Below are positions 43,701-58,563 of a stretch of 64,000 nt of DNA, one piece after another. The notes beneath the pieces were generated by a model. That model did not search any database and was not told the DNA's origin. It saw only the letters and a list, made by a program, of their open reading frames with translations. Position numbers and translations under genes: made by a program. The stretch spans positions 744,001-808,000 of the forward strand of contig OZ218955.1 in NCBI GenBank assembly GCA_965112735.1. Reading direction: 5' to 3'. Numbering within the stretch: the stretch's first letter is position 1; every line of letters starts with the position of its first letter. Origin of the DNA: Phaeosaccion multiseriatum. Its lineage: Eukaryota; Protista; Ochrophyta, other classes.

Positions 43701-45961
43701 TTAGTCCAGAAGAGTGGTCTTGACGATGAGGCCCGTCACCACGTAAGGATCCATGTTGGAGGAGGGCCTCCTGTCCTCAAAGTACCCCTTGCCATCCTTC
43801 TCCGCCGTTCGGGGGATGCGAATGGAGGCCCCTCGGTTGGCGACGCCGTACGAAAAGGCGTCCATCGAGGCGGTCTCGTGCTTGCCCGTCAGCCTGCGCT
43901 CGTTGCCCTCTCCGTAGGCGTCAATGTGCTCCTGGTGCTTCTTTCCGAGCTTCTCAATGGCCTCGATGATCTTGGCGTATCCGCCGTCCTCGCGCATAGC
44001 CTTGGTGGAAAAGTTGGTATGGCACCCTATGGGGGAGGGGGGGGGGGGGAGAGGAATTGGACACAGAGTAGAGATGGAGCGGTGGGGGGTGACGGCGGTT
44101 AGTTGCGGAGGATACGCCAGTCGTTTGTCACAAAAACGCCAGTCGTTCTCCTCCTCCCTTTCTCTTTCTTCTTTTTATTGACGGTTCCTTTCCTTTCTCT
44201 TCCTTCCTTCTCACTCACCTGCTCCGTTCCAGTCTCCCTCAATGGGCTTGGGGTCCAGGGACACAATCACTCCGAAGAGCTCGCACACACGGTACAAGAG
44301 GTAGCGAGACATCCACACCTCGTCCGCGCCGGCGATACCGACCGAGGGACCAATCTGGTACTCCCACTGACCGGGCATCACCTCTCCATTGACTCCCGAG
44401 ATCTGAAGGCCGGCGAAGAGGCAGGCCTTGTAGTGTGCCTCCATGATGTGTCGGCCGAAGGAGTTCTCCGTTCCGGCGGAGCAGTAGTACGGTCCCTGCT
44501 CACCGGGGTAGCCTCCCTTGGGCCAGCCTGTGGATGGAGGAGGAGGAGGAGGAGGAGGGAGCAGGGTAACATCAGTGAAAGTCCATTTGGGCCAGTACGC
44601 CACACATATGCACCAACGTGGTCCTCTCCTCTCCGGCCGTTCCTCTGGCACATCCCCATCATCCACCCACTCCACCGACTCCACTCACTCACCGAAGGGC
44701 GTCTTGCCGTCGGCCTCGAAGAGGGTGTACTCCTGCTCAATGCCCCACCAGCACTCCTGGTCCTCCACCTTGGCCATGGCCTCGGCACAGGCCACACGCG
44801 TGTTGTTGTCAATGGCGGTGCCATCGGGCTTGTAGCAGTCGCAGATGACGAGGAGGTTTTCTCCGCCACGGAAAGGGTCGGGGTAGTAGGCCTGGGGGCG
44901 GAGAATCACCTCCGAGTCATCTCCGGGGGCCTGGCCGGTGGAAGAGCCGTCGAAGTTCCACTCGGGGCTGTGGACGGTGGTGTGGTGTGGCGTGATGTGA
45001 TGTGATGCATACATGGAAATGGTGGGTTGAGTTGGAGGATATTGCATTGGAGGGGGGCAGGCGAGTGACAGAGAGATCGGGCGGGGTAGGGTGGTGTGTG
45101 CGTGTGTGTCGCGAGCTAAACAGTTACACCTCCCCTCTCCTCACACATCTCTTCCGCTCTCTTTCATCTCTTTGACCTCCTCCCAAACCCCTCTCCCCAG
45201 TATGTGAGTAAAGGGTATGAGGGACGGAAGTATTTGGTGTAAAAATTGTTCAGAGGGGAGGCCCAGCTCAGGAGCCCAAAAGGAGGGAGCCCCATCACCA
45301 GCAACGCCCCCTCCCCACCCCCCCCCCCCTCCCAAAAAAAAAAACCCGCATTACTACGCAGCCCATCGCCCACACCCAGTGCAGCCCTCTCCTCCTACGA
45401 TCATGCGTACTCCTCTCGGTTAGCACATGCGGGGCAATTCTATACGGTCTCCATGACACGCTCATGACAAAGAAAGGTCTGGCGCTCACTTTGAAACTCA
45501 TCACTTACAGGTCAGACGGCTTGGAGGGCTTCTTCACCAGGGTGCGAGTCTTGGAGCGCATGTCCTGGCCGGAGCCGCCAATCTGATCCGTGCAAATTGG
45601 GACGGGCGAGAGCAAGGTGAGGGAAGGGTTGGGTTAGGGAGGGCGAGAGGAGCCGAAAAACATTCTTGCATCGCTCAGCAACGCAAGGAACCAGCCCAAG
45701 ACTCAGCCCCTACTACACTGCGAACCATCTCATCCATGCATTCTACCACTCGGTTCCTCCCAGGTCGGCCCCACCAGCCGAAAGGAGGCTACAAACATGA
45801 GCTTTCTTTTCTTTTCGGGCTCGTATGAGTGGATCCTTTCGCAGCCTCATACTCACCCAAATGTACTCCGCCATGTACTTCCCCTTCTGGTCCAGGTCGA
45901 GGAAGCGACCAAGCACGGCATCGCTGAGGGCGGTCTGCTGAGTGAAGACAGGGTTGGACAT
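43701..45961 (-). CDS. GLN1: Glutamine synthetase type II (eukaryotic), no obvious targeting peptide
   Basis: Five exons: [118 protein letters not shown]. Confidence 0.97.
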
Positions 45962-46478
45962 GGTGGAGCTGTAACAAAGGATATATGGGTAATGGTCGAA
46001 TCTGGGGCCAAAGCCACGCCACACGATTTCCCAGGGGGGCGGGATGGCAGCTCATGGCGGCCGCTCAGGATACATGTATTCGACGACCCCCCCAAATCCA
46101 AAAAATTTAGAAATTAAGAAAGGGGGGGGGGGCTTTTAAGGCCGCTAGGCCGCTCGACAACCTTCGCCTATCTCTAGGCCGCTCACTTTTCAGTCCTAGG
46201 CAGCCTCCCGGTGGAGGGGGGGGGGTGGGTGGCTGGATGGGGCCGCCCAGTCCAGCCAGTGGAAGCAGCACGTGTGCAGGCATGAACACCTCGCAGGGCA
46301 GGCGAGGCGGAAAGAGACAACACGATCTTTTCCCTTGGTAGCTAGCTAGTCTTTTCAAAAAACAAAACAAAAACAGGGAAGGCCTTTTTCAAATGGGTCT
46401 ACGACTTCTGCAACTGCGCTGCATGACGAGCGACTGCCCTGTGCTACCTATGCCCCTGTCCTGCCATCTGTGATATGT

Positions 46479-47017
46479 CTATGACCTATGCACAACCCTA
46501 CTGGTGGGGGAGGGCAGGCCCGAGGCCCGAGGTGTGGGCAGCTTCCTTGCCCTACTTGGGCTCGGCAGCAGGACGGGGCTGCTCAAGCGGGCCAGGTTGG
46601 GAGGCGAAACGGCAGGCGAGTCCACCGTCATTGGCTCCTGACCCCCCTTCCCCTCCTGGCCCTGCTGCCCCTCGGGCTCCCACCTCTCCCACCGCCCCTT
46701 GTTCTGCTGCTTCTGCTGCTGCTCAGACTGCTGGGGCGAGAGAGGCAAGGTCGTGGAGGCCTGTCTCTCCCCCTTGGCCTGCTCCTCTCCCAGCACACCC
46801 ACCGCCTCCTCCCTCCGTTCTCCTCCACTCAGCGGGCCGGGAGCCGCTCCGCTGGGTGCTGCTGATGCTGCTGCTCCTGCTGCATCGTCTGCAGATTGGG
46901 CCTCTGCCCCTGGTGCTTCGTCATGGCCCACGGATGACGCCGCCAGCGAGCCTTCCGACGGGGTGTAGTATGGCGTTGTCTCTCCACTCCTGTCCGCACC
47001 TCCTCCTCCTCCTCCTC

Positions 47018-47048
<31 letters not shown>

Positions 47049-50000
47049 CTTTGCTGCCTCGACTGCATGACCTGAGCCAGCCCTAGCTCTGGCTCCAACA
47101 GGAGGCGCAGCATTTGCATTGGCGGCAGCACTTGCAGAACTTGCAGCAGCCGAGGCCCTTGAGTCTCTCCGGCGGCGTTCAGTACGCCCCCGCGCCACCT
47201 GGGAACACAACAACCATAACGACAATAACAGCAGCAACAGCAAAGAGGCCGTATCCATTTCGCAAGAAGAGTGTGAGAGAAGGAGGAACAGGCGGATAGG
47301 AGCGGGACGTACAAGATTCACGTGCTTCATTTCAAGTCTGGAGCGAGGAGACACATGACAAGGTATATAGCACCCTTCAGTCTCCCCCTCCCTCCTCCTC
47401 CTCCTCCTCCTCCTCCTCCTCCTCCTCGTCCTCCTCCTCCTCCACCTCCCCATCCACTGCCACGTTCCTCTCTCAACTCACTCAAAACTTACCATCATCT
47501 CCCTCTGAGCCTCCAGCTCCATCTTATCCACGGCCTGGTCCCAACAATTCCGCTTCGGCCGCCCCTGCCCCCCTGCGTCACCCGTGCCCGTACAGACGTG
47601 CAACGGCTCCTCCGGCAAGTGCGCAAGATGTGCAAGTTGACTCCGAAGCATCTTCAGACCCTCTCGCACGCGCTCGGCCTCTTCCGTTGCCTTTCTCTGT
47701 CGTGCAAGCTCAATCTCGTCCGAAGAAGTCCTGTTGTTTCCGCTGCTAGACGCACTGATACTGCCACTGCCTTGCTTGGCAGTACGAGCAGGCTCCGTAT
47801 CACCAACAGCATCATCTCCAGAGTTGGGACAAGATTTGTCGCCGTCCAGTCCCAAGTCCATTTCGTCTGCAGATCCGACGACTGGCACGGCACGGTCCAA
47901 ACCAGTGTCGTCCTTCTTCCCCTCCTTCTCCTCCGCCTTCCCCTCTGCCTCCTGCACCTTGAGCCACGCTTGATGCCCCACGTCTTTCCACTTGCTGCTG
48001 CTACGCCTCCTGAGCGAAGCCCCCCCTTCGCGTCTTTCGAGCGATCTATCATCACCTTCACTGCCGCTGACGCCGCCACCACCACCAGCAACACCAGTTG
48101 GTGATACTGATGATACAGCAGCTGCTGCGTCCACCCGCTCCTGCTGCACCTCCTCCTTCCTGTGGGAAGAAGTCGCAGCGTCGTCGTCAACGGCAATCGC
48201 AGGCTTCAATGCATTGCATGTGCCAATGCCAGTGCCAGTGTCACTGCGGTTGCTGCCCTTCCCAACAGGGGCGCCTGAACCAACCCGAGGCCGATGACTC
48301 CTCGGGGATGCGCCTGTTTCGCCGCCCTCCTCGTCGCTTGACACATCCTCTGCATTCAGCGCCTGCTTCACCTCCGCCTGAAGCCTCTTGGTCAGCTCGT
48401 GAAGCTTCACCCCGCGCTGCACGGCGTCGATCCCTTCCCTCTTCTTCAGGAAGCGGATGAGCTTCATGGCCTCTCCCCGATGCCAAATGGACCCCTCGAG
48501 CAACCCTCTCAGCCCTCCATACACTGACTCCACCTCCGTGCCTTTGCCCCCCCCTGCAAGACCCTCGTACCGTCGCACCACCTCACGCAGCGCCTCGCAA
48601 CTTGACGACACGGTAGCCTTCTTTTTGCTCCCCAGACCCTCTCCAAGCGAGACCCATGCCCCCGTCGCGCAGCTGCCGCCGTCCCCCCCTCCTTCGCCCT
48701 CCTCGCGTCCCCCTGTTCCTTTGTCCATCAACAGAAACACCACACTCATCGCCGAGGCTTTGGTAGCGGGCTCGCTGCTCGCCAGCGCCTTCTCCAGCAG
48801 TGCGGACACCATTGCATTGCTCTCCTCGCAAGACAGACCCCCCTCCCCAGCTGCAGTACTCGACGGGGGGTCTACGCCCCTCTGTTGGACGTACGCATCT
48901 GTGGCACCCACCGCCGCTAGCAAGGCAGCCTTGTTTACGTCCTTCAGCATGCCAGCCAGTAGAGGAGCGCTCACAGCCACACCGTCTCCACTACTGCTGC
49001 GCCCTCCGCCCCGCAAGAGAAGTTGCTTGACTTCTTCGTACGCTGCCAGACGCACCTTCCACGATCGGCTCTTTACTCGCGCTTCCAAGGGACCATCAGC
49101 ATCGACCCCGTCTCCTGCCTCTATTTGGGTATCACTTTGCCCATTCACCGCCGATGATAGAGCGCTTTGGTCTTGGTCCTTTACACCTGGTGAAGCCTCG
49201 TCTAATACCGTTCCGCCCCTCTTGGCTCCTCCTATTGGTCGATCTTCAATGGCAGGAACCTCTTCGGCCTGCACCACCACCTGACCTTGCCAGGCAGCGG
49301 CAGCCGCGTCAGCGTCCTCGGCCTCGTCGAGCAAGCTGCCCAGCTTGTTCTTGGAGCACACCCACCCGTCCTCCCGGCCCCCATACGCCACCCTCAACCA
49401 CTTGTCCTTGGTCTCCAGCACCCTCACCCAATCGCCCTTTGAGACCACTGCCAGCTCCATAGCGAAGGCGTCTGCCTCATCGCGAGCCTTCAGCGCCCCC
49501 CTTGCCCGCATGTATCTGAAGCCGTCTGAGGCCTTGGGCCCAACTCCTTCTTCCACAGGCTGCTCCTCCGCTCCCATGCTTTCCGTTCCTCCTCCCACAG
49601 GCTGCTCGTCCACTCCTATGCTCCCTCCTCCGCCTCCCCCCACAGGCTGCTCGTCTGCTCCCATCCTCTCTGCTCCTCCTCCTACCGGCTGCTCCTCCAC
49701 CCCCATGTCGCCAGCACCTCCTCCCACAGGCTGCTCGACCATTCCCATGCCCCCCATTCCCCCTCCGCCTTTGCCTCCTATTGGTCGATCTTCAATGGCA
49801 GGAACCTCTTCGGCCTGCACCACCACCTGACCTTGCCAGGCAGTGGCAGCCGCGTCAGCGTCCTCGGCCTCGTCGAGCAAGCTGCCCAGCTTGTTCTTGG
49901 AACACACCCACCCGTCCTCTCGGCCCCCATACGCCACCCTCAACCACTTGTCCTTGGTCTCCAGCACCCTCACCCAATCGCCCTTTGAGACCACTGCCAG

Positions 50001-53000
50001 CTCCATAGCGAAGGCGTCTGCCTCATCGCGAGCCTTCAGCGCCCCCCTTGCCCGCATGTATCTGAAGCCGTCTGAGGCCTTGGGCCCAACTCCTTCTTCC
50101 ACAGGCTGCTCCTCCGCTCCCATGCTTTCCGTTCCTCCTCCCCCAGGCTGCTCGTCCACTCCTATGCTCCCTCCTCCGCCTCCCCCCACAGGCTGCTCGT
50201 CTGCTCCCATCCTCCCTGCTCCTCCTCCTACCGGCTGCTCCTCCACCCCCATGCTGCCAGCACCTCCTCCCACAGGCTGCTCGGCCATTCCCATGCCCCC
50301 CCCTCCCCCTCCGCCTTTGCCTCCTATTGGTCGATCTTCAATGGCAGGAAGCTCTTCGGCCTGCACCACCACCTGACCTTGCCAGGCAGCGGCAGCCGCG
50401 TCAGCGTCCTCGGCCTCGTCGAGCAAGCTGCCCAGCTTGTTCTTGGAGCACACCCACCCGTCCTCCCGGCCCCCATACGCCACCCTCAACCACTTGTCCT
50501 TGGTCTCCAGCACCCTCACCCAATCGCCCTTTGAGACCACTGCCAGCTCCATAGCGAAGGCGTCTGCCTCATCGCGAGCTTTCAAGGCCCCCCTTGCCCG
50601 CATGTATCTGAAGCCGTCTGAGGCCATGGGTCCGAGGGCCGCTTCATCCCCCGTGGCATTCGCTGGCCCACTGGCTCCACTCCTTGCCCCCACCGGCTGC
50701 TCCTCCACTCCCATACTCCCTCCTCCTCCGCCTCCCACAGGCGGCTCGTCCATTCCCACCCTTCCAGCTGCTCCTCCTCCTCCCATCGGTTGCTCCTCAA
50801 CTCCCACGTTATCTCCTCCTCCTCCTCCTCCTCCTCCCATGCTGCCAGCCCCTCCTCCCACCTGCTGCTCCTCCATTCCCATACCCCCTCCTCCTCCTCC
50901 TCCTCCCACAGGCTGCTCGGCCACTCCTACATCCTCTACTCCCATACCCCCCCCTCCTCCTCCGCCTTTCCCTCCTATTGGTCGATCTTCAATGGCAGGA
51001 ACCTCTTCGGCCTGGACCACCACCTGACCTTGCCAGGCCGTGGCAGCAGCGTCAGCGTCCTCGGCCTCGTCGAGCAAGCTGCCCAGCTTGTTCTTGGAGC
51101 ACACCCACCCGTCCTCCCGGCCCCCATACGCCACCCTCAACCACTTGTCCTTGGTCTCCAGCACCCTCACCCAATCGCCCTTTGAGACCACTGCCAGCTC
51201 CATAGCGAAGGCGTCTGCCTCATCGCGAGCTTTCAAGGCCCCCCTTGTCCGCATATATCTGAAGCCGTCTGAGGCCATGGGTCCGAGGGCCGCTTCATCC
51301 CCCGTGGCACTCGCTGGCCCACTGGCTCCACTCCTTGCCCCCACCGGCTGCTCCTCCACTCCCATACTCCCTCCTCCTCCGCCTCCCACAGGCTGCCCGG
51401 CTACTCCCCTGCTCCCGGCCCCTCCTCCCACCGATTGCTCCTCCATTCCCATGCCCCCTGCTCCTCCTCCTCCCACTCGTTGCTCACTCACTCCCATGCT
51501 GCCTGCTCCTCCTCCCACAGGTTGCTCGTCCATCCCAACATGAGGACTGTTGGGTGCGTCCGTTGCCTGACCTTGCCAGGCCGTGGCAGCCGCGTCAGCG
51601 TCCTCGGCCTCGTCAAGTAGACTTCCCAGCTTGTTCTTAGAACACACCCACCCGTCCTCCCGGCCCCCATACGCCACCCTCAACCACTTGTCGTTGGTCT
51701 CCAGCACCCTCATCCAGTCACCTTTCTTCACCACTGTCAGCTCCATGCCGAAGGCGTCTGCTTCATCGCGAGCCTTAAGCGCCCCCCTTGCTCGTACGTA
51801 TCTGAAGCCGTCAGAAGCCGCAGGCCCAACGGGTGCTACTGTATCACCAACTCCGATGGCTGCCGGCGGACCTCCGGCAGTGGCCACTGCAGCAGCAGCC
51901 GGAAACCCTCCCTCGGCGGAAGAAAGTGGGGCAGTCGCAGAAGGACCCCCCATGCCACTTCCCCCACCGCCTCCCACCCTCTGCTCGTCTATGCCATCAG
52001 CTGCCATAGAGGCGGGTTGCTTCGTAGTCTGCCTCACCCATGCCGCCGCCGCCTCCTCCCCATCCTCTGCATCAGTCAGCAGTCGGCCGCGCTTGTTGCC
52101 AGTGAGCACCCAGCCCTTGTCCTCCTTTCCCTCCTGCACATCAGGGGCGAAGTGCACGTACTTGACGTATACCCAGTCGCCATTTGTTTCCAGTACCTGC
52201 ACGTACTCATTCCTACCCACCGTGCCCATTTCGTAGCCTTCGGCCTCGTCCCTGACCTTGAGGTTTCCAGAGGCCTGCATGTATCTGAAACCGTCAGAAG
52301 CGAAGCCCCCTACAGGGCCAGAGGATGCGAAGCTCTGCTGCTGCTGCGGTTGCTGTTGCTGCTGCGTCGCTGTATCACCAACTGCTGCTCTTGTGCCTAC
52401 CTTGTGAGCGTTACCCATGCTCGGGGCTTCCGCGGCGAGAGCGGCAGCAGCAGTCACCAAATCCTCTGCCGCTTGCTGCCACATGGCGGCTGCAACAGCA
52501 GAGTCTGGGAGAAGCTCCACCAGATTGCCATTTCGATTGGAGATTTTGGTCCAGCCGTCCTCCAGCCCCCCCTGCGAGACCTGGACGTACTCCCCGTTGT
52601 TCTGCAGGACCTTCAGTACGTCGCCTGGGCTCGCCACTCTGATCTCAACGCCTGTGAAGTCGGGCTCCTCCCTAATCTTCACGCCCGTACTGACGACCCT
52701 CATGTAGGTACTACCGTAGTCCACAGGCCCGGCTGCCATACCACCAACTGCTGGGGCTGCTGCCGGTACTGCTTGGTACTGCTGCTGTTGCTGCGGTGGT
52801 GGTGGTGGTGGTGGTGGGTCGGAAGCCGCCACGCCACCCCTCCCAGTACCCCTCTTCTTTGAGGTTGCTGCTACTGCTGCCTCTGCTGCCTGCTGCCACT
52901 GCATGGCCGCTGCTTGGACATCATGGGGGGCCACATTCTCCACCAGGTTCCCGACACGATTGGAGATTTTGGTCCAGCCATCCTCCAGCCCCCCCTGCGA

Positions 53001-55133
53001 GACCTGGACGTACTCCCCGTTGTTCTGCAGGACCTTCAGTACGTCGCCTGGGCTCACTACTCTGATCTCAACGCCTGTGAAGTCGGGCTCCTCCCTAATC
53101 TTCACGCCCGTACTGACGACCCTCATGTAGGTACTACCGTAGTCCACAGGCCCGGCTGCCATACCACCAACTGCTGGGGCTGCAGCCGGTACTGCTTGGT
53201 ACTGCTGCTGTTGCTGCTGCTGCGGTGGTGGTGGTGGTGGGTCGGAAGCCGCCACCCCACCCCTCCCAGTACCCCTCTTCTTTGAGGTTGCTGCTACTGC
53301 TGCCTCTGCCGCCTGCTGCCACTGCATGGCCGCTGCTTGGACATCATGGGGGGCCACATTCTCCACCAGATTCCCGACACGATTGGAGATTTTGGTCCAG
53401 CCGTCCTCCAGCCCCCCCTGCGTAATCTTGACGTACTCCCCGTTGTTCTGCAGGACCTTCAGTACGTCGCCTGGGCTCACTACTCTGATCTCAACGCCTG
53501 TGAAGTCGGGCTCCTCCCTTATCTTCACGCCCGTACTCACTACTCTCATGTAGGAGCTATTATAGTCGACAGGTCCCGTTGGTGGACCACCAACTGCTGG
53601 TGGTGCTTGGTACTGCTGCTGCTGCTGCTGCTGCTGTGGTGGTGGTTGTGGGGTGGCAGCCGTCACACCACCCCTCCCGCTACCCCTCTTCTTTGGCAGT
53701 GCAGCTACTGCCGCGTCTGCCGCCTGCTGCCACTGTCTGGCTGCTGCTGGAACATCATGGGGGGGCACCTCTTCCATCAGATTCCCGACACGATTGGAGA
53801 TTTTGGTCCAGCCGTCCTCCAGCCCCCCCTGCGAGACCTGGACGTACTCCCCGTTGTTCTGCAGCACTTTCACGATGTCTCCCTGCTCGATGGTTCGTAT
53901 CTCTACCCCAATGAAGTCGGGCTCCTCTCTAATCTTCACACCTGTGCTGACTGCAACCATGTACGCACTGTTCAGATCAACAGCAACAGCTGGCTGAGCC
54001 GGAGGTACCCCTCCCGCCACTGCAGGGGCAGCAGCAGAAGCAGACTGAGACGGAGGCGCAAGACCATTATTGACAGGGGGCGGTGCGTGTGTAGTCTGAA
54101 AGCCAGCGCTCCCATCCGCGGGCACAAGTATCTCGTGGGGAAGCATCGATGGCGCATTTGCCAGCCAAGCTTCTCTCCGCCCATCCCACAGCACACGTAG
54201 AAAGTCGCCTCTCCGACCCAGGATGGAAAACGGCAGGTTGCTTTGGACTGTGCTGATGACCTGCGGTTCAAGGAAAGGGGGAAGAGAGAGGGTGAAGGGG
54301 GGGAGGCGAAGGTCAAGTATGGTTTCGTCAGCAGATGGACGGAGCAGCACAAGAGAAGGAGAGGGCTTCTCCCTCTGTTGGCCTACAGGCGAAGAGAGAC
54401 TCCTTCGCGCCAGCCACAACCACCACCCCCCCTTAGTCTCCCACAACTTGCCTTGACACCACCGGACGTACCTCTCCAAACGCTGCATCTGGGGAAGCTC
54501 TCAGGTTCAGAGCGACACCCTGTGGCAGCTGCGGGTGTGCCCGATACTCCACCGCCTCGATGAATTTGAGTATCTGTGTGGCTCCGGCCCTGCTTAGCAT
54601 CCACACGCTCGGCTGTGAGGGGTGGAGGACCCTCAACCAGAGTTCGTTCTGTTCTACCACTTCGAACACCAACCCTTCCTCTGCTACAAACACTTCCACT
54701 TCGGAAGCGTCACCAAGTGGGGCGCTGCGCTTACGCAAGGAGCAGCCGAGGGGCAGGCCATCGCTGAGGGTGGCGAGGGTGGGGACGAAAGGGTGGAGGA
54801 GCGGAGTGTCCACACCAGGAGCCACCGTCAACATCCAGCCTTGGACAGTGGAGCTACTTGTGCCGGGGGCAGCAGCCGGGTCTGTGACTGCGTGTTTGAT
54901 GAAGATCCAGTCTCCCTGGATGGCTTTTTGAGGTGTGGGGGAAGGGGTTGGGTCGAGGGGAGGTGGGTGGGAGAGGGGAGCAAGGGAGGGAAGGAAGTGA
55001 CAAAAGAGCGAGAAAGAGAGGGGGGGTTCAAAGGGGTACCAGTGGGAAAGGAAAGAGCCTCGTAGTCAGAACTAAGTTCAAGGCTCCTTCTCAGCCCTAT
55101 GCACACACAGACACAGACACGCATGCACACAAA

Positions 55134-55168
<35 letters not shown>

Positions 55169-55532
55169 CTGTGACGTACACCAGCTCTCCGTAGCCGACC
55201 TCGGCCAACTTTGCCCCCGAAGTATCCGGGGAGGCCCGAATGGCAAGCCTCGCCCCCACTGTCTGGACGTAGGGATCCACCTCATAGAAGGAGGGGAACT
55301 CTGCGGGGACGAGACAAGACGCGTCCGCCCACCCTGTTGCTCCTCCTCCTGAGATGGTGAGGAAGACCCAGCCCTCGGCCTTGGCAGAGGCGCTTGCAGT
55401 TTGACCAGGAAGAAGCTGCTGACCTGTGGACTGCGGCGGCCCTCCCTCAGCCCCAGGGTAGCTCGTCTGGAGGATGACTCCCCCACCACCCATACAGGGG
55501 GCGGGAGTCACCCCCAAGGCTTGGAGCACCAT
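46479..55532 (-). CDS. Giant protein: about 13 bacterial-type SH3 (SH3_3/SH3b-like) repeats + EQPVGG linker repeats + XMAP215-type TOG domain + coiled-coil/disordered tail
   Basis: Exons about 55532-55169, 54925-54471, 54260-47492 (6.8 kb), 47198-46479. Repeats such as VKIREEPDFTGVEIRVVSPGDVLKVLQNNGEYVQVSQGGLEDGW and LKARDEADAFAMELAVVSKGDWVRVLETKDKWLRVAYGGREDGWV. TOG at about 48360-49095 (LEARVKSRSWKVRLAAYEEV...KDVN...). Start codon is uncertain. Confidence 0.82.
49284..53960 (-). repeat. Coding tandem repeats within the giant exon
   Basis: Type-A SH3 unit at about 423-bp period (4 copies, about 52500-53960). Type-C unit at about 546-650-bp period (5 copies, about 49280-51810). Domain cores are near-identical at nucleotide level. 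Confidence 0.92.
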
Positions 55533-56479
55533 GTGAGAAGTAAGAAGCCTATTCAACCTATTCAAAGAGCTTTTCTCTGGGACCAGCCTGATCCAAAGAG
55601 GGGACGGAACGCAGAAGAGAGGGGGGAGAGAAGTCATGAGAGGGAAGCAGAGAGCGCGAGGAGAGCGTGGGGAGAGGAGAGGAGGGCCGGGAGGGAAAAA
55701 AAGACACAAATGCCAACGACAAAAAAATTAGGTGGACAATAAGGAGAGTGCACAAGAAGGGTCAGCCTTCAAAACTACTGTACACTCTGGGCGTAGAGTA
55801 TAGCACCTGGAGGAGGAAGCACAGCGGCACAGGGGGAATGATGTGTGCGGCAAAAGGACAAAGCCCCCCAACTGGAAAAGTCGAAATCAACAGCCTCGAT
55901 TTTTAAATCCGACTCGATTTTTAAATCCGACGCGAGCGGGTAGGGTCTGAACCCCACCCAACCCAGGCGGCTCAGGGGAAGGCAGCAGCGTCGGGCGTGT
56001 ACCACCTGTACTACGCGTTGAATCCCTTGGTTCGACTTCTCTCTCTCGACTCTCTCTCTACAATCGACTCGACAGAACGATGGTATCCTCAGCCTAAGCC
56101 CACAACTTCCCCGCGGCCGCTGACGTCACAAGTTGTCAACTTGACCTGCCAGCCAACTGTGACACTCCACCGACACGCCGCTGACACGCGCAAGCCACTC
56201 CCCGTGCCTGGCTGGGCGGCCGTGATGGGTGATGGAGCGCGAGAATAGCTAGGGTCGGCTCTTGGATCGACGCTTCGTTGCCCCCCCCCCCCTGTTCTCC
56301 ACTATCGCCTCCTCCCGGACTCCTGCGGAGTCGTCTCTTCCCGAAGCCCTGCCTGCCAAGGGTACAATCCCCCGCACGACGAAACGAAGCGTATAGTAGC
56401 GGGCAGACTCCGAGCCGAGACTCTGAAGAGGCCGTAGCTCCACCTCCATCCACCGCAACGGCTGGCTGAGGCCTCCCGA

Positions 56480-56903: not shown

Positions 56904-58563
56904 TTACGAGGCCTCCACCTCCACCTCTGCCCTCTTCTTGTCTTTTCCCTTCCACGTCCACATGCCTCTGCTCTCCTCCCACGACGGAGTGGTGCCGTCT
57001 GCTGCCGTCGCTGCGGCCGCCCCCGCGGGGCCTCCCCCGGTGGGTAGGGGCTGTGTGAGAGCAAGTACGTCCATCATGTCTCCGACATATGCCAAGGCAC
57101 GCCGCTTCTCCTCGAAGGTCACGGCGGGGGCGCGATAGGCCAACGAGTAGTCGCCGTAGACGCCTGAGGGAGTTGGTGATACAGAGGAAGGGGAGGGGGG
57201 GGGAGGGAAGGAGGGGGGAGGGGGTGGTGGGCCGCAAAGTCAAGAGAGCGCTCCAATAATTAAGACAAGCAAGTGACGTCTCTACGTGCCTACAAACTCC
57301 TACGTACCCTCTGTGCCGTTCGCTCCCCCGTGGTAGGCAGGCTCTCCCCCTCCTCCCCCTCCTCCTCCTCCTCCTCCTCCTCCTCCTCCTCCTCCTCCTC
57401 GCCCCTTGTTCCTATTGCGGGCTCCATCCCCTCTCCAAAAGGTGGAGCCTACGATATGTCCCCCGTCCTTGTGGAAGTCAGGAGAGTACTCCACGTGATG
57501 GTAGAGCTTGTCCCCCGGGGTGGCCACGGGGATGTTGTTGCGCTTTAAGCGGTTGGTTTGCACCTGACCGTGTGTGAGTGTGTGAGTGTGTATGTGTGTG
57601 TGTATGTATGTGTGTGTGTTTCATGCGTGTTTCAACTTGTGTGAGTAGAGAACGGAGGACCGGCACCACCCCGAGTCGGAGGCAAGGCACAGAACCATTC
57701 GATATCGATCTTATGGTCCTCGAAACAGGAGAAACAAGAACAACTGGAACTGGAACTGAACCTGCCCCTTCCCCCTTGTGTGAGCAGGTAGGTACTCACT
57801 CACCTTCTTCTTCTGCCCAAAGGCCTGTTCCAGTGTGGCCTCCGGCGACTGATTGTAGCGCACGAGCTCCCCTGACTTCGGGTTGACAGGGTTGAACTTG
57901 CGGTCAATCTGGTGGATAGAGGCGGTGGGCGAGGGTGCAGGGGGGGTAAGGTAGTCAGTCCACATAGTCCACATAGTCCACACAATCCACACTGTCCGCA
58001 GCCTTCCTCTCCCGTCCACTGCCATCTGCCCCCGGCCCACTCACACACAGGCCCTTCTCTGGGATATCGTATCCACTCCTGTTGCTGAACTCCGGCACCG
58101 GTCGGAGCCCCTCCGGTCTATCCTTCGGGACGGGCTTGGCCCCTACCCGCCGAAGGCCCTGTACACGCGGGTAGGCATCTCCCTTCGTGTGGGGACCAAG
58201 GATGCGCCGGCAGGGGCGGAACTGCCATTCATCGGAAGGCTGCTGCTGTGGGTATTTCAAGCGGCCTTTATCACCGGGTGCGAGGAAGGGTTCCCGTTCC
58301 CTGGTGATGCCACCAGCAGTGAGTGAGTGGGTGGATGGAGTGGAGTGGAGTGAGTTGAGGGAGGGAGTGAGGGAGTGCTTGAGCTGAATGAAGGAGAGAG
58401 GGAGTGAGGGAATGAGTGAGTGCGGTAGTGAGTGAGTTTCCTTAGAGTTGAGGGAACTAGTGGGCGAGCGGGAAGGCGCAAGTCGGGATGGAGAGGAGAA
58501 ATACCACAGGGAGAGGAGGGGCAAAGGGCCAAGGGGCTTTCGATTCCAGAGATTCGATTGCAT
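56904..58563 (-). CDS. SPATS1/SASRP1-like (cilia/centrosome-associated) protein
   Basis: Five exons starting MQSNLWNRKPLGPLPLLSLW-EREPFL. RNNIPVATPGDKLYHHVEYSPDFHKDG resembles the conserved RNGIP..PGD..Y..PE.S..FHK block of SPATS1 (recalled, not searched), followed by TFEEKRR. Confidence 0.65.

Follow-up and report, generated by a model that had tools for sequence, protein, structure and literature searches.

TOG domains are the core tubulin-handling module of eukaryotes, known from the architectures of XMAP215, CLASP, Crescerin/TOGARAM and CEP104, and it is chiefly in cell-wall-binding proteins that SH3_3 domains have been described. In the present study, we describe a nuclear gene of the stramenopile alga Phaeosaccion multiseriatum, on the minus strand of a 64-kb stretch of DNA (the window), in which modules of both kinds are predicted to meet in one protein, an array of SH3b units being followed by a single TOG domain. 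The core of the gene is its exon 3 (47493..54260, on the minus strand like all parts of the gene given below), 6.8 kb and 2256 codons without a stop, which carries the second half of a degenerate repeat (R4), ten SH3b units with low-complexity linkers, a TOG domain of the XMAP215 type and an acidic tail. Since the array and the TOG domain lie within one uninterrupted exon, their fusion is independent of splicing. An earlier reading by a model, which had only the letters and their open reading frames (ORFs), had seen here a giant fusion of an SH3b array with a TOG domain and had taken it for a microtubule-associated scaffold; our analysis confirms the observation of this sequence-only reading and partly supports its interpretation, such a scaffold being a reasonable inference.

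Among the described systems, TOG1 of the XMAP215/Dis1/Stu2/Alp14 proteins (structures 4ffb and 6mze/6mzf) comes closest to the TOG part, being the best match in sequence as well as in structure and sharing the Trp-Lys of HEAT-A, the Asp-x-Asn of HEAT-B and the Thr-Lys of HEAT-C. As in the yeast members of this family, the sequence after the TOG domain is of low complexity, with what may be a coiled coil. Unlike the XMAP215 family, in which an array of two to five TOG domains stands at the N-terminus, the present protein has one TOG domain, placed about 2,000 residues from the N-terminus and after the SH3b array; its second HEAT triad is strongly diverged from that of TOG1, the protein as a whole is acidic, and a basic linker for lattice binding cannot clearly be recognised in exon 3. 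With CLASP the logic may be alike, namely a TOG head combined with a basic, Ser/Pro-rich Sx[IL]P stretch, which here lies in the putative exon 4 and possibly arose by chance. It is known for CLASP2 that a single TOG domain (TOG2), once brought to microtubule tips, suffices for catastrophe suppression (PMC6035287). Unlike CLASP, the TOG domain here is nearer to XMAP215 TOG1 (structural Z 14.5 vs 12.2) and is accompanied by no CLIP-ID domain. CEP104 and Crescerin/TOGARAM offer a precedent for TOG domains that are joined to unrelated modules, beta-rich or otherwise, and that act at the flagellar tip, and CEP104/Crescerin TOG domains were among the structural matches to our TOG model (5lph, Z 10.0; 5dn7, Z 11.1); unlike these proteins, the one described here lacks a jelly-roll, a zinc finger and an array of four TOG domains, and its TOG domain matches theirs less well than it matches XMAP215 TOG1.

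The array has its described counterparts in bacteria and their phages. The autolysin of Clostridium perfringens carries ten SH3b domains (PMC8470621), and this protein, the endolysin of phage phiSM101 (4krt) and the NlpC/P60 proteins (3pvq, 6bim) share with the present array the Pfam family, the fold and the tandem layout. Unlike the bacterial and phage proteins, neither a signal peptide nor a hydrolase domain is seen here, and every unit continues into a conserved extension of its own, which consists of an Asn-x-x-Gly-x-Leu segment and a helix with a Trp. Also foreign to the bacterial arrays are the long, eukaryote-style low-complexity linkers, the fusion to a cytoskeletal domain and the introns within repeats.

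The SH3b array and its predicted fold

The mechanical ORF that contains most of the locus (47478..54488, 2336 codons) carries all ten strong repeat units as well as the TOG domain. Searched against Pfam, it matched SH3_3 (PF08239) in 11 stretches with an E value of 1e-60 and 202.1 bits (gathering cut-off, 27 bits); taken singly, units B5 (31.0 bits) and A3 (28.1 bits) lie above this cut-off and unit B0 (24.6 bits) below it. The ten well-kept units, each of about 85-90 amino acids, comprise four of type A, one intermediate unit B0 and five of type B, which start at ORF residues 173, 310, 451 and 592 (A), 731 (B0), and 892, 1073, 1290, 1472 and 1654 (B). The type-A units A1-A4 (53703-53972, 53292-53561, 52869-53138 and 52446-52715, together spanning 52446..53972) score 130-137 bits against a hidden Markov model (HMM) built from the ten units, and the TRF program reported for this region a period of 423 nt in 3.4 copies. 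B0 (52029..52298) bears a 9-residue insertion inside the barrel and scores 112 bits, and the type-B units B1-B5 (51546-51815, 51003-51272, 50352-50621, 49806-50075 and 49260-49529; span 49260..51815) score 149-152 bits. Over the whole 64-kb window, the unit HMM detected these ten (112-152 bits) and no further strong copy. The sequence-only reading had counted about ten well-preserved repeats, a figure that the unit HMM bears out, and the Pfam matches place both the repeats and the TOG domain of that reading far beyond chance.

Types A and B are about 35% identical to each other. Across the ten units 17 columns are invariant, including Lys-x-Arg in the first strand and Gly-Trp in the last SH3 strand; outside the span of the Pfam model, these columns take in the Asn-x-x-Gly-x-Leu segment and the Trp of the helix. 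The linkers, all of low complexity, differ in kind: those of type A are rich in Pro and Gln, whereas those of type B are acidic, contain much Gly and carry a short repeat of the EQPVGGG kind 16 times. The type-A linkers after A1-A3 also hold three copies of KKRGxGRGG (window 52800-53700), a basic motif that resembles an RGG box or a nuclear localisation signal, although the protein is otherwise acidic.

Beyond the ten units, three to four degenerate repeats lie in exons 1 and 2 and at the start of exon 3. Residues 95-121 of exon 1 match SH3_3 profile positions 2-28 (24.1 bits), a whole repeat in exon 2 matches SH3_4 (residues 68-105, 19.7 bits), and the first 39 residues of exon 3 match SH3_3 positions 15-50 (20.1 bits), all three below threshold; the fourth, R1 (~55308-55478), was recognised by eye only. 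At least three degenerate repeats had been proposed from the letters, and with these the predicted protein would hold about 14 SH3b-fold modules in total.

For the fold, an AlphaFold model of unit B5 was built on an alignment of the ten units. With a mean predicted local distance difference test (pLDDT) of 85.7, it shows seven strands forming a beta barrel, followed by a C-terminal helix. The best Foldseek match of this model was the SH3b domain of Trichomonas vaginalis NlpC1, an SH3-like domain of Bacillus anthracis and a Clostridium phage endolysin also standing at the top ranks; the E values are weak (~5e-3), as expected for a domain of 70 residues, with template modelling (TM) scores by target of up to 0.77. 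An exhaustive VIA-align search of 48,161 chains gave 3pvq (Z 9.6), 4krt (Z 9.2; root-mean-square deviation, rmsd, 1.5 Å over 65 residues), 2evr (8.2), 6bim (7.9) and 9ovi (7.8). Nearly all of its best 50 rows were SH3 or SH3-like, with bacterial-type SH3b domains mostly on top and a eukaryotic SH3 domain (7csp, Z 8.4) at rank 3. A shape search of the ESM Atlas with B5 returned, at TM 0.67-0.75, almost exclusively bacterial SH3_3 clusters, and a PDB sequence search with the SH3-unit profile gave nothing significant. The assignment of the repeats to the SH3_3/SH3b type, already made in the sequence-only reading, thus holds by Pfam and by predicted fold: the repeats do model as SH3 barrels.

The bacterial stamp of the array suggests another reading, in which the protein would be secreted or displayed at the surface and its SH3b array would bind the cell wall of bacteria, either prey or associates, comparable with the laterally acquired NlpC/P60-SH3b enzymes of Trichomonas. 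The known cell-wall-binding company of SH3_3 and the best Foldseek match, T. vaginalis NlpC1, both speak for it. In addition, the 5' end of the gene is only predicted, so that a signal-peptide exon could have been missed. We nevertheless regard this reading as very improbable. A hydrophobicity scan of exons 1 and 3 and of the in-frame sequence upstream revealed no signal-like or membrane-like stretch, in agreement with the absence of a signal peptide claimed earlier (the 5' end being a prediction), and the Pfam search of the ORF revealed no hydrolase domain. Moreover, the array shares its exon with a TOG domain, a module for which cytosolic tubulin is the sole ligand known; the linkers consist of poly-Gln, poly-Pro and poly-Gly tracts of the sort usual in disordered parts of intracellular proteins; and the repeats are interrupted by introns. 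In addition, a scan of bacterial and archaeal genomes yielded no relative close enough to point to a recent transfer.

The TOG domain and its two halves

The region after the array (48339..49094, ORF residues 1799-2050) is, to judge from its alignments and its model, a TOG domain of the XMAP215 TOG1 type, closest to TOG1 of Stu2 and Alp14. Its HEAT repeats A-C (48723-49094) are well supported and HEAT D-F weakly. Pfam XMAP215_CLASP_TOG (PF21041; gathering cut-off, 27.1 bits) matched residues 1799-1922 with 54.8 bits in the whole ORF and with 61.7 bits for the TOG piece alone, the alignment covering only profile positions 5-123 of 230; no further match to this family was found in the 286 residues after the TOG domain or in exon 4. 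In a PDB sequence search with the TOG region, the only significant matches were TOG1 of Alp14 and of Stu2 (E 5e-5 to 1e-4). The sequence-only reading had pointed to TOG1 of XMAP215/ch-TOG on the strength of several short motifs, all of which are present.

Residue by residue, W1810-K1811 of HEAT-A align to W23-K24 of Stu2, D1850-x-N1852 of HEAT-B to its Asp-Ser-Asn, and T1909-K1910 of HEAT-C to its Thr-Lys. In Stu2, the Trp and Lys of HEAT-A contact tubulin, as does Arg200 of HEAT-E (PMC4142611). The alignment therefore shows retention of the predicted beta-tubulin-facing loop determinants (Trp-Lys, Asp-x-Asn and Thr-Lys of HEAT A-C), and for this beta-tubulin half a generic HEAT repeat devoid of TOG loop residues can be ruled out. 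The same does not hold for the alpha-tubulin half, HEAT D-F, in which no significant similarity was detected. The motif order put forward earlier fares accordingly: its HEAT A-C part aligns to Stu2, whereas its later motifs, GLGSKK and HRGEAMKL, fall in predicted intra-HEAT loops, but neither hhalign nor a shuffle test lends them support.

TOG domains consist of six HEAT repeats in an oblong fold of about 220-250 residues. A structure model of the present domain, built on a four-sequence alignment, contains 12 helices, with pLDDT values of about 90 for HEAT A-C, 68-79 for HEAT D and below 50 beyond model residue 190. By VIA-align it superposes on TOG1 of Alp14 with Z 14.5 (198 residues, rmsd 5.2) and on TOG1 of Stu2 with Z 13.4 (190 residues, rmsd 4.8), and its eight best matches are TOG domains without exception, led by TOG1 and followed by importins. 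The basic residues K1955-K1957, R2004 and R2025/K2028 occupy predicted intra-HEAT loop positions in HEAT D, E and F, respectively, at low model confidence; R2004 stands at the predicted HEAT-E loop, the site of the alpha-tubulin contact R200 in Stu2, in a region that is not significantly aligned. Overall, the TOG motifs are distributed over the six loops predicted within the HEAT repeats.

These two halves bear directly on the possibility that the TOG-like part is a relic, in which only the first three HEATs were kept and the domain now serves as a generic helical protein-binding module or spacer, the whole being a multivalent SH3b scaffold in a process that does not involve microtubules. The alignments of Pfam, BLAST and hhalign all end after HEAT C, neither hhalign nor the shuffle test finds significant similarity beyond it (z -0.7 and +1.2 for the second half against those of two canonical TOG1 domains), and model confidence is lowest there. 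Gly/Glu-rich insertions lie between HEAT B and C and between HEAT C and D, and CLASP2 TOG1 and some other TOG-like domains are known not to bind tubulin (PMC6035287). Against a relic, however, the solvent-exposed Trp-Lys of HEAT-A and Thr-Lys of HEAT-C have been kept, for whose survival there is no structural reason; twelve rightly spaced helices are still predicted, the whole model (residues 13-262) superposing on residues 14-240 of the TOG1 chain at Z 14.5; and basic residues occupy the predicted loops of HEAT D, E and F. Taking both sides together, we consider a relic unlikely, although it deserves to be taken seriously.

Gene model, selection and relatives

A gene model of four exons was read from the DNA, in which exons 1, 2 and 4 are putative (in the splice signals below, a slash marks the junction). 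Putative exon 1 (55167..55532) comprises 122 codons from the ATG at 55532, with the degenerate repeat R1 and the first half of R2, and ends at a donor GGT/GTGTGT or CAG/GTGTGT, upstream of which the frame is open. It is followed by putative intron 1 (54916..55166, about 251 nt), in which a (CA)n microsatellite occupies 55102-55168. The SH3 repeat broken off at the end of exon 1 continues (Trp-Ile-Phe-Ile-Lys ... Gly-Trp) in putative exon 2 (54472..54915, 148 codons; acceptor cag/GGA, donor GAG/GTACGT at 54472/54471), which holds the second half of R2, the whole of R3 and the first half of R4. Putative intron 2 (54261..54471, 211 nt) has the donor GTACGT, a pyrimidine tract and the acceptor ccgcag/GTC (54261/54260), and leads into exon 3. 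The start codon at 54488 that the mechanical ORF would suggest was dropped, the first 76 codons of that ORF being predicted intron 2. As two SH3 repeats are split by introns in a consistent manner, the putative exons 1 and 2 are tied to exon 3 as one gene.

The tail of exon 3 after the TOG domain (47493..48338) is of low complexity, with an isoelectric point (pI) of 5.1, small basic patches (+4, +5), no Pfam match and a heptad-like stretch at ~47616-47723, the coiled coil being judged by eye only. Putative intron 3 (47199..47492, 294 nt) begins at a donor ATG/GTAAGT four codons ahead of the stop of the ORF, contains this stop codon and a (GAG)n microsatellite (47382-47449), and ends after a T-rich tract in an in-frame acceptor cccag/GTG. 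Putative exon 4 (46479..47198) adds 239 codons and a stop, is Ala/Gly/Ser-rich and matches no Pfam family; its GC content by codon position is not clearly coding-like, and its reality is uncertain. Its pI is 9.5, rising to 11.7 in the Ser/Pro-rich last 60 residues, where SGLP, a motif of the Sx[IL]P kind (46512-46523), stands in a context resembling that of EB1-binding tip localisation. The model as a whole predicts 2765 residues, and we expect the encoded protein to have ~2,500-2,800 residues and to be free of segments that resemble a signal peptide or a membrane span. The two ends of the feature proposed earlier, 46479 and 55532, fit this four-exon model.

The differences between repeat copies lie mostly at synonymous sites, which indicates that the array is under purifying selection. 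The ratio of non-synonymous (dN) to synonymous (dS) divergence between copies is 0.06-0.2, synonymous changes per site exceeding non-synonymous ones 5- to 15-fold, as for A1 vs A2 (dS 0.68, dN 0.13), B1 vs B2 (dS 0.54, dN 0.11) and B2 vs B5 (dS 0.12, dN 0.01). Unitigs assembled from the short reads of four runs, all of one sample, span 47450-49257 unbroken, that is, the tail, the TOG domain and the end of the last repeat unit; within the array they break, and the copy number of the near-identical B units rests on the assembly.

As for relatives, word-index protein searches (TOG region; one SH3 unit; proteins of 1285-4088 aa) found nothing, and phmmer, run exhaustively with the TOG region against 1.8 billion representatives, gave two weak hits of 35% and 34% identity, both devoid of SH3 repeats. 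One of them, P0001 (locus L001 in JGI metagenome 3300045300, 952 nt), represents the N-terminal TOG1 of a gene of ordinary type, whose upstream DNA is non-coding and shows no SH3 repeats; the other, P0002, is a two-TOG protein, and a word-index search seeded with it gave only one more canonical TOG protein. L001 and L002 (Logan SRR30413545, 3492 nt) hold the nearest public TOG sequences, both being the TOG1 domain at the N-terminus of ordinary XMAP215-like genes probably from eukaryotic sources. Scans of metagenome contigs and of bacterial and archaeal genomes revealed no relative, and a feature search of the ESM Atlas returned nothing for the SH3-plus-TOG piece; two A units drew generic SH3_3 clusters and nothing else. 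Among the papers searched, none combines a bacterial SH3 with a TOG domain, and those on SH3b or PF08239 in eukaryotes deal with secreted hydrolases only. The architecture, which the sequence-only reading had not recognised, was likewise not met in our sequence, structure and literature searches. We therefore regard the SH3b array with a single TOG as a new architecture made from two known domains, not found by sequence or structure searches, the databases not having been queried by architecture; it is apparently confined to one lineage.

A further reading is an artefact of assembly or annotation, or a decaying pseudogene, in which an expanded tandem repeat happens to lie beside a duplicated XMAP215 fragment. 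The DNA of units B2-B5 is 97-99% identical, and it is inside the array that the short-read unitigs break; no RNA-type sequencing run on record contains the locus; and the TOG domain is similar to TOG1 as found at the N-terminus in canonical genes of the XMAP215 kind (P0001-P0003). We give this explanation hardly any credence, since an exon of 2256 codons runs free of stops in DNA of 60% GC, the excess of synonymous over non-synonymous change between copies is that of selected sequence, the unitig 47450-49257 joins the TOG domain to the tail of the repeats in all four runs, and SH3 repeats are cleanly split across two predicted introns. To judge from the DNA, this is a real, selected and lineage-specific nuclear gene.

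The surroundings of the gene can be described briefly. The next gene downstream (44200-45965, minus strand) codes for a type II glutamine synthetase and contains introns; its N-terminus, of typical sequence, starts near 45965, and an exon piece (44214-44498) matches Pfam Gln-synt_C with 26.5 bits. On the 5' side lies another minus-strand gene (window 56905-57200), whose open frame ends in a stop near 56905, so that about 1.4 kb remain to accommodate the SH3b-TOG promoter and a 5' exon, should one have been missed. An 18-nt unit, in 2.3 tandem copies, lies upstream of the gene at 55895-55935. Many plus-strand ORFs of 100-290 codons that overlap the gene between 47322 and 54200 are Pro/Ser/Leu-rich with the periodicity of the array, and are mirror images of its GC-rich repeats, not genes. 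A search of the 64-kb window against Rfam gave no match.

A candidate scaffold for tubulin or microtubule ends

With moderate confidence, we lean towards a cytosolic scaffold for tubulin or microtubule ends, anchored or made multivalent by its SH3b array. On the basis of its domains, the TOG head would bind the alpha/beta-tubulin dimer or the microtubule end, and the SH3b array, on flexible disordered linkers, would either hold this tubulin-binding head at a cell structure or partner or give the protein multivalency. In the cytosol, the ligand of the SH3b modules would be expected to be a protein or a peptide rather than peptidoglycan. The tail may aid pairing through its heptad-like stretch and, if exon 4 is real, the basic SxLP end might add targeting to microtubule tips.

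Several observations weigh against this scaffold. HEAT D-F, the alpha-tubulin side, are diverged and weakly modelled, so that full tubulin binding is not assured, and Z values near 13-14 are not rare among helical repeats. The SxLP motif is short and lies within Ser/Pro-rich sequence, and can thus be a chance match. The protein is acidic (pI 4.8, with 6.3 for the TOG domain) and its exon 3 has none of the strongly basic lattice-binding linker of XMAP215 proteins, which, together with the presence of one TOG only, speaks against the role of a classical polymerase. Finally, the protein, metagenome and prokaryote-genome searches found no orthologue to show conservation of the loop residues, and, with the locus missing from the RNA-type runs, exons 1, 2 and 4 and the true start are predictions.

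A bolder picture, which we think rather improbable, starts from the linkers. The SH3b modules might bind the Pro/Gln-rich or Gly-rich linkers of the protein itself or those of its partners, giving a self-associating meshwork or condensate that concentrates tubulin via the TOG domain and organises or nucleates microtubules at a stramenopile-specific site, for example the flagellar roots or some other organising centre. If true, this would be a new way of building a microtubule-organising scaffold from a bacterial cell-wall-binding fold.

The significance of the scaffold that we favour is limited in that the gene apparently belongs to one lineage and its function is deduced from domains alone. 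Nevertheless, a further TOG architecture would widen the known list of XMAP215, CLASP, Crescerin/TOGARAM and CEP104, and the protein of P. multiseriatum would be a clear case of the SH3b fold at work inside a eukaryotic cell, not on bacterial walls.

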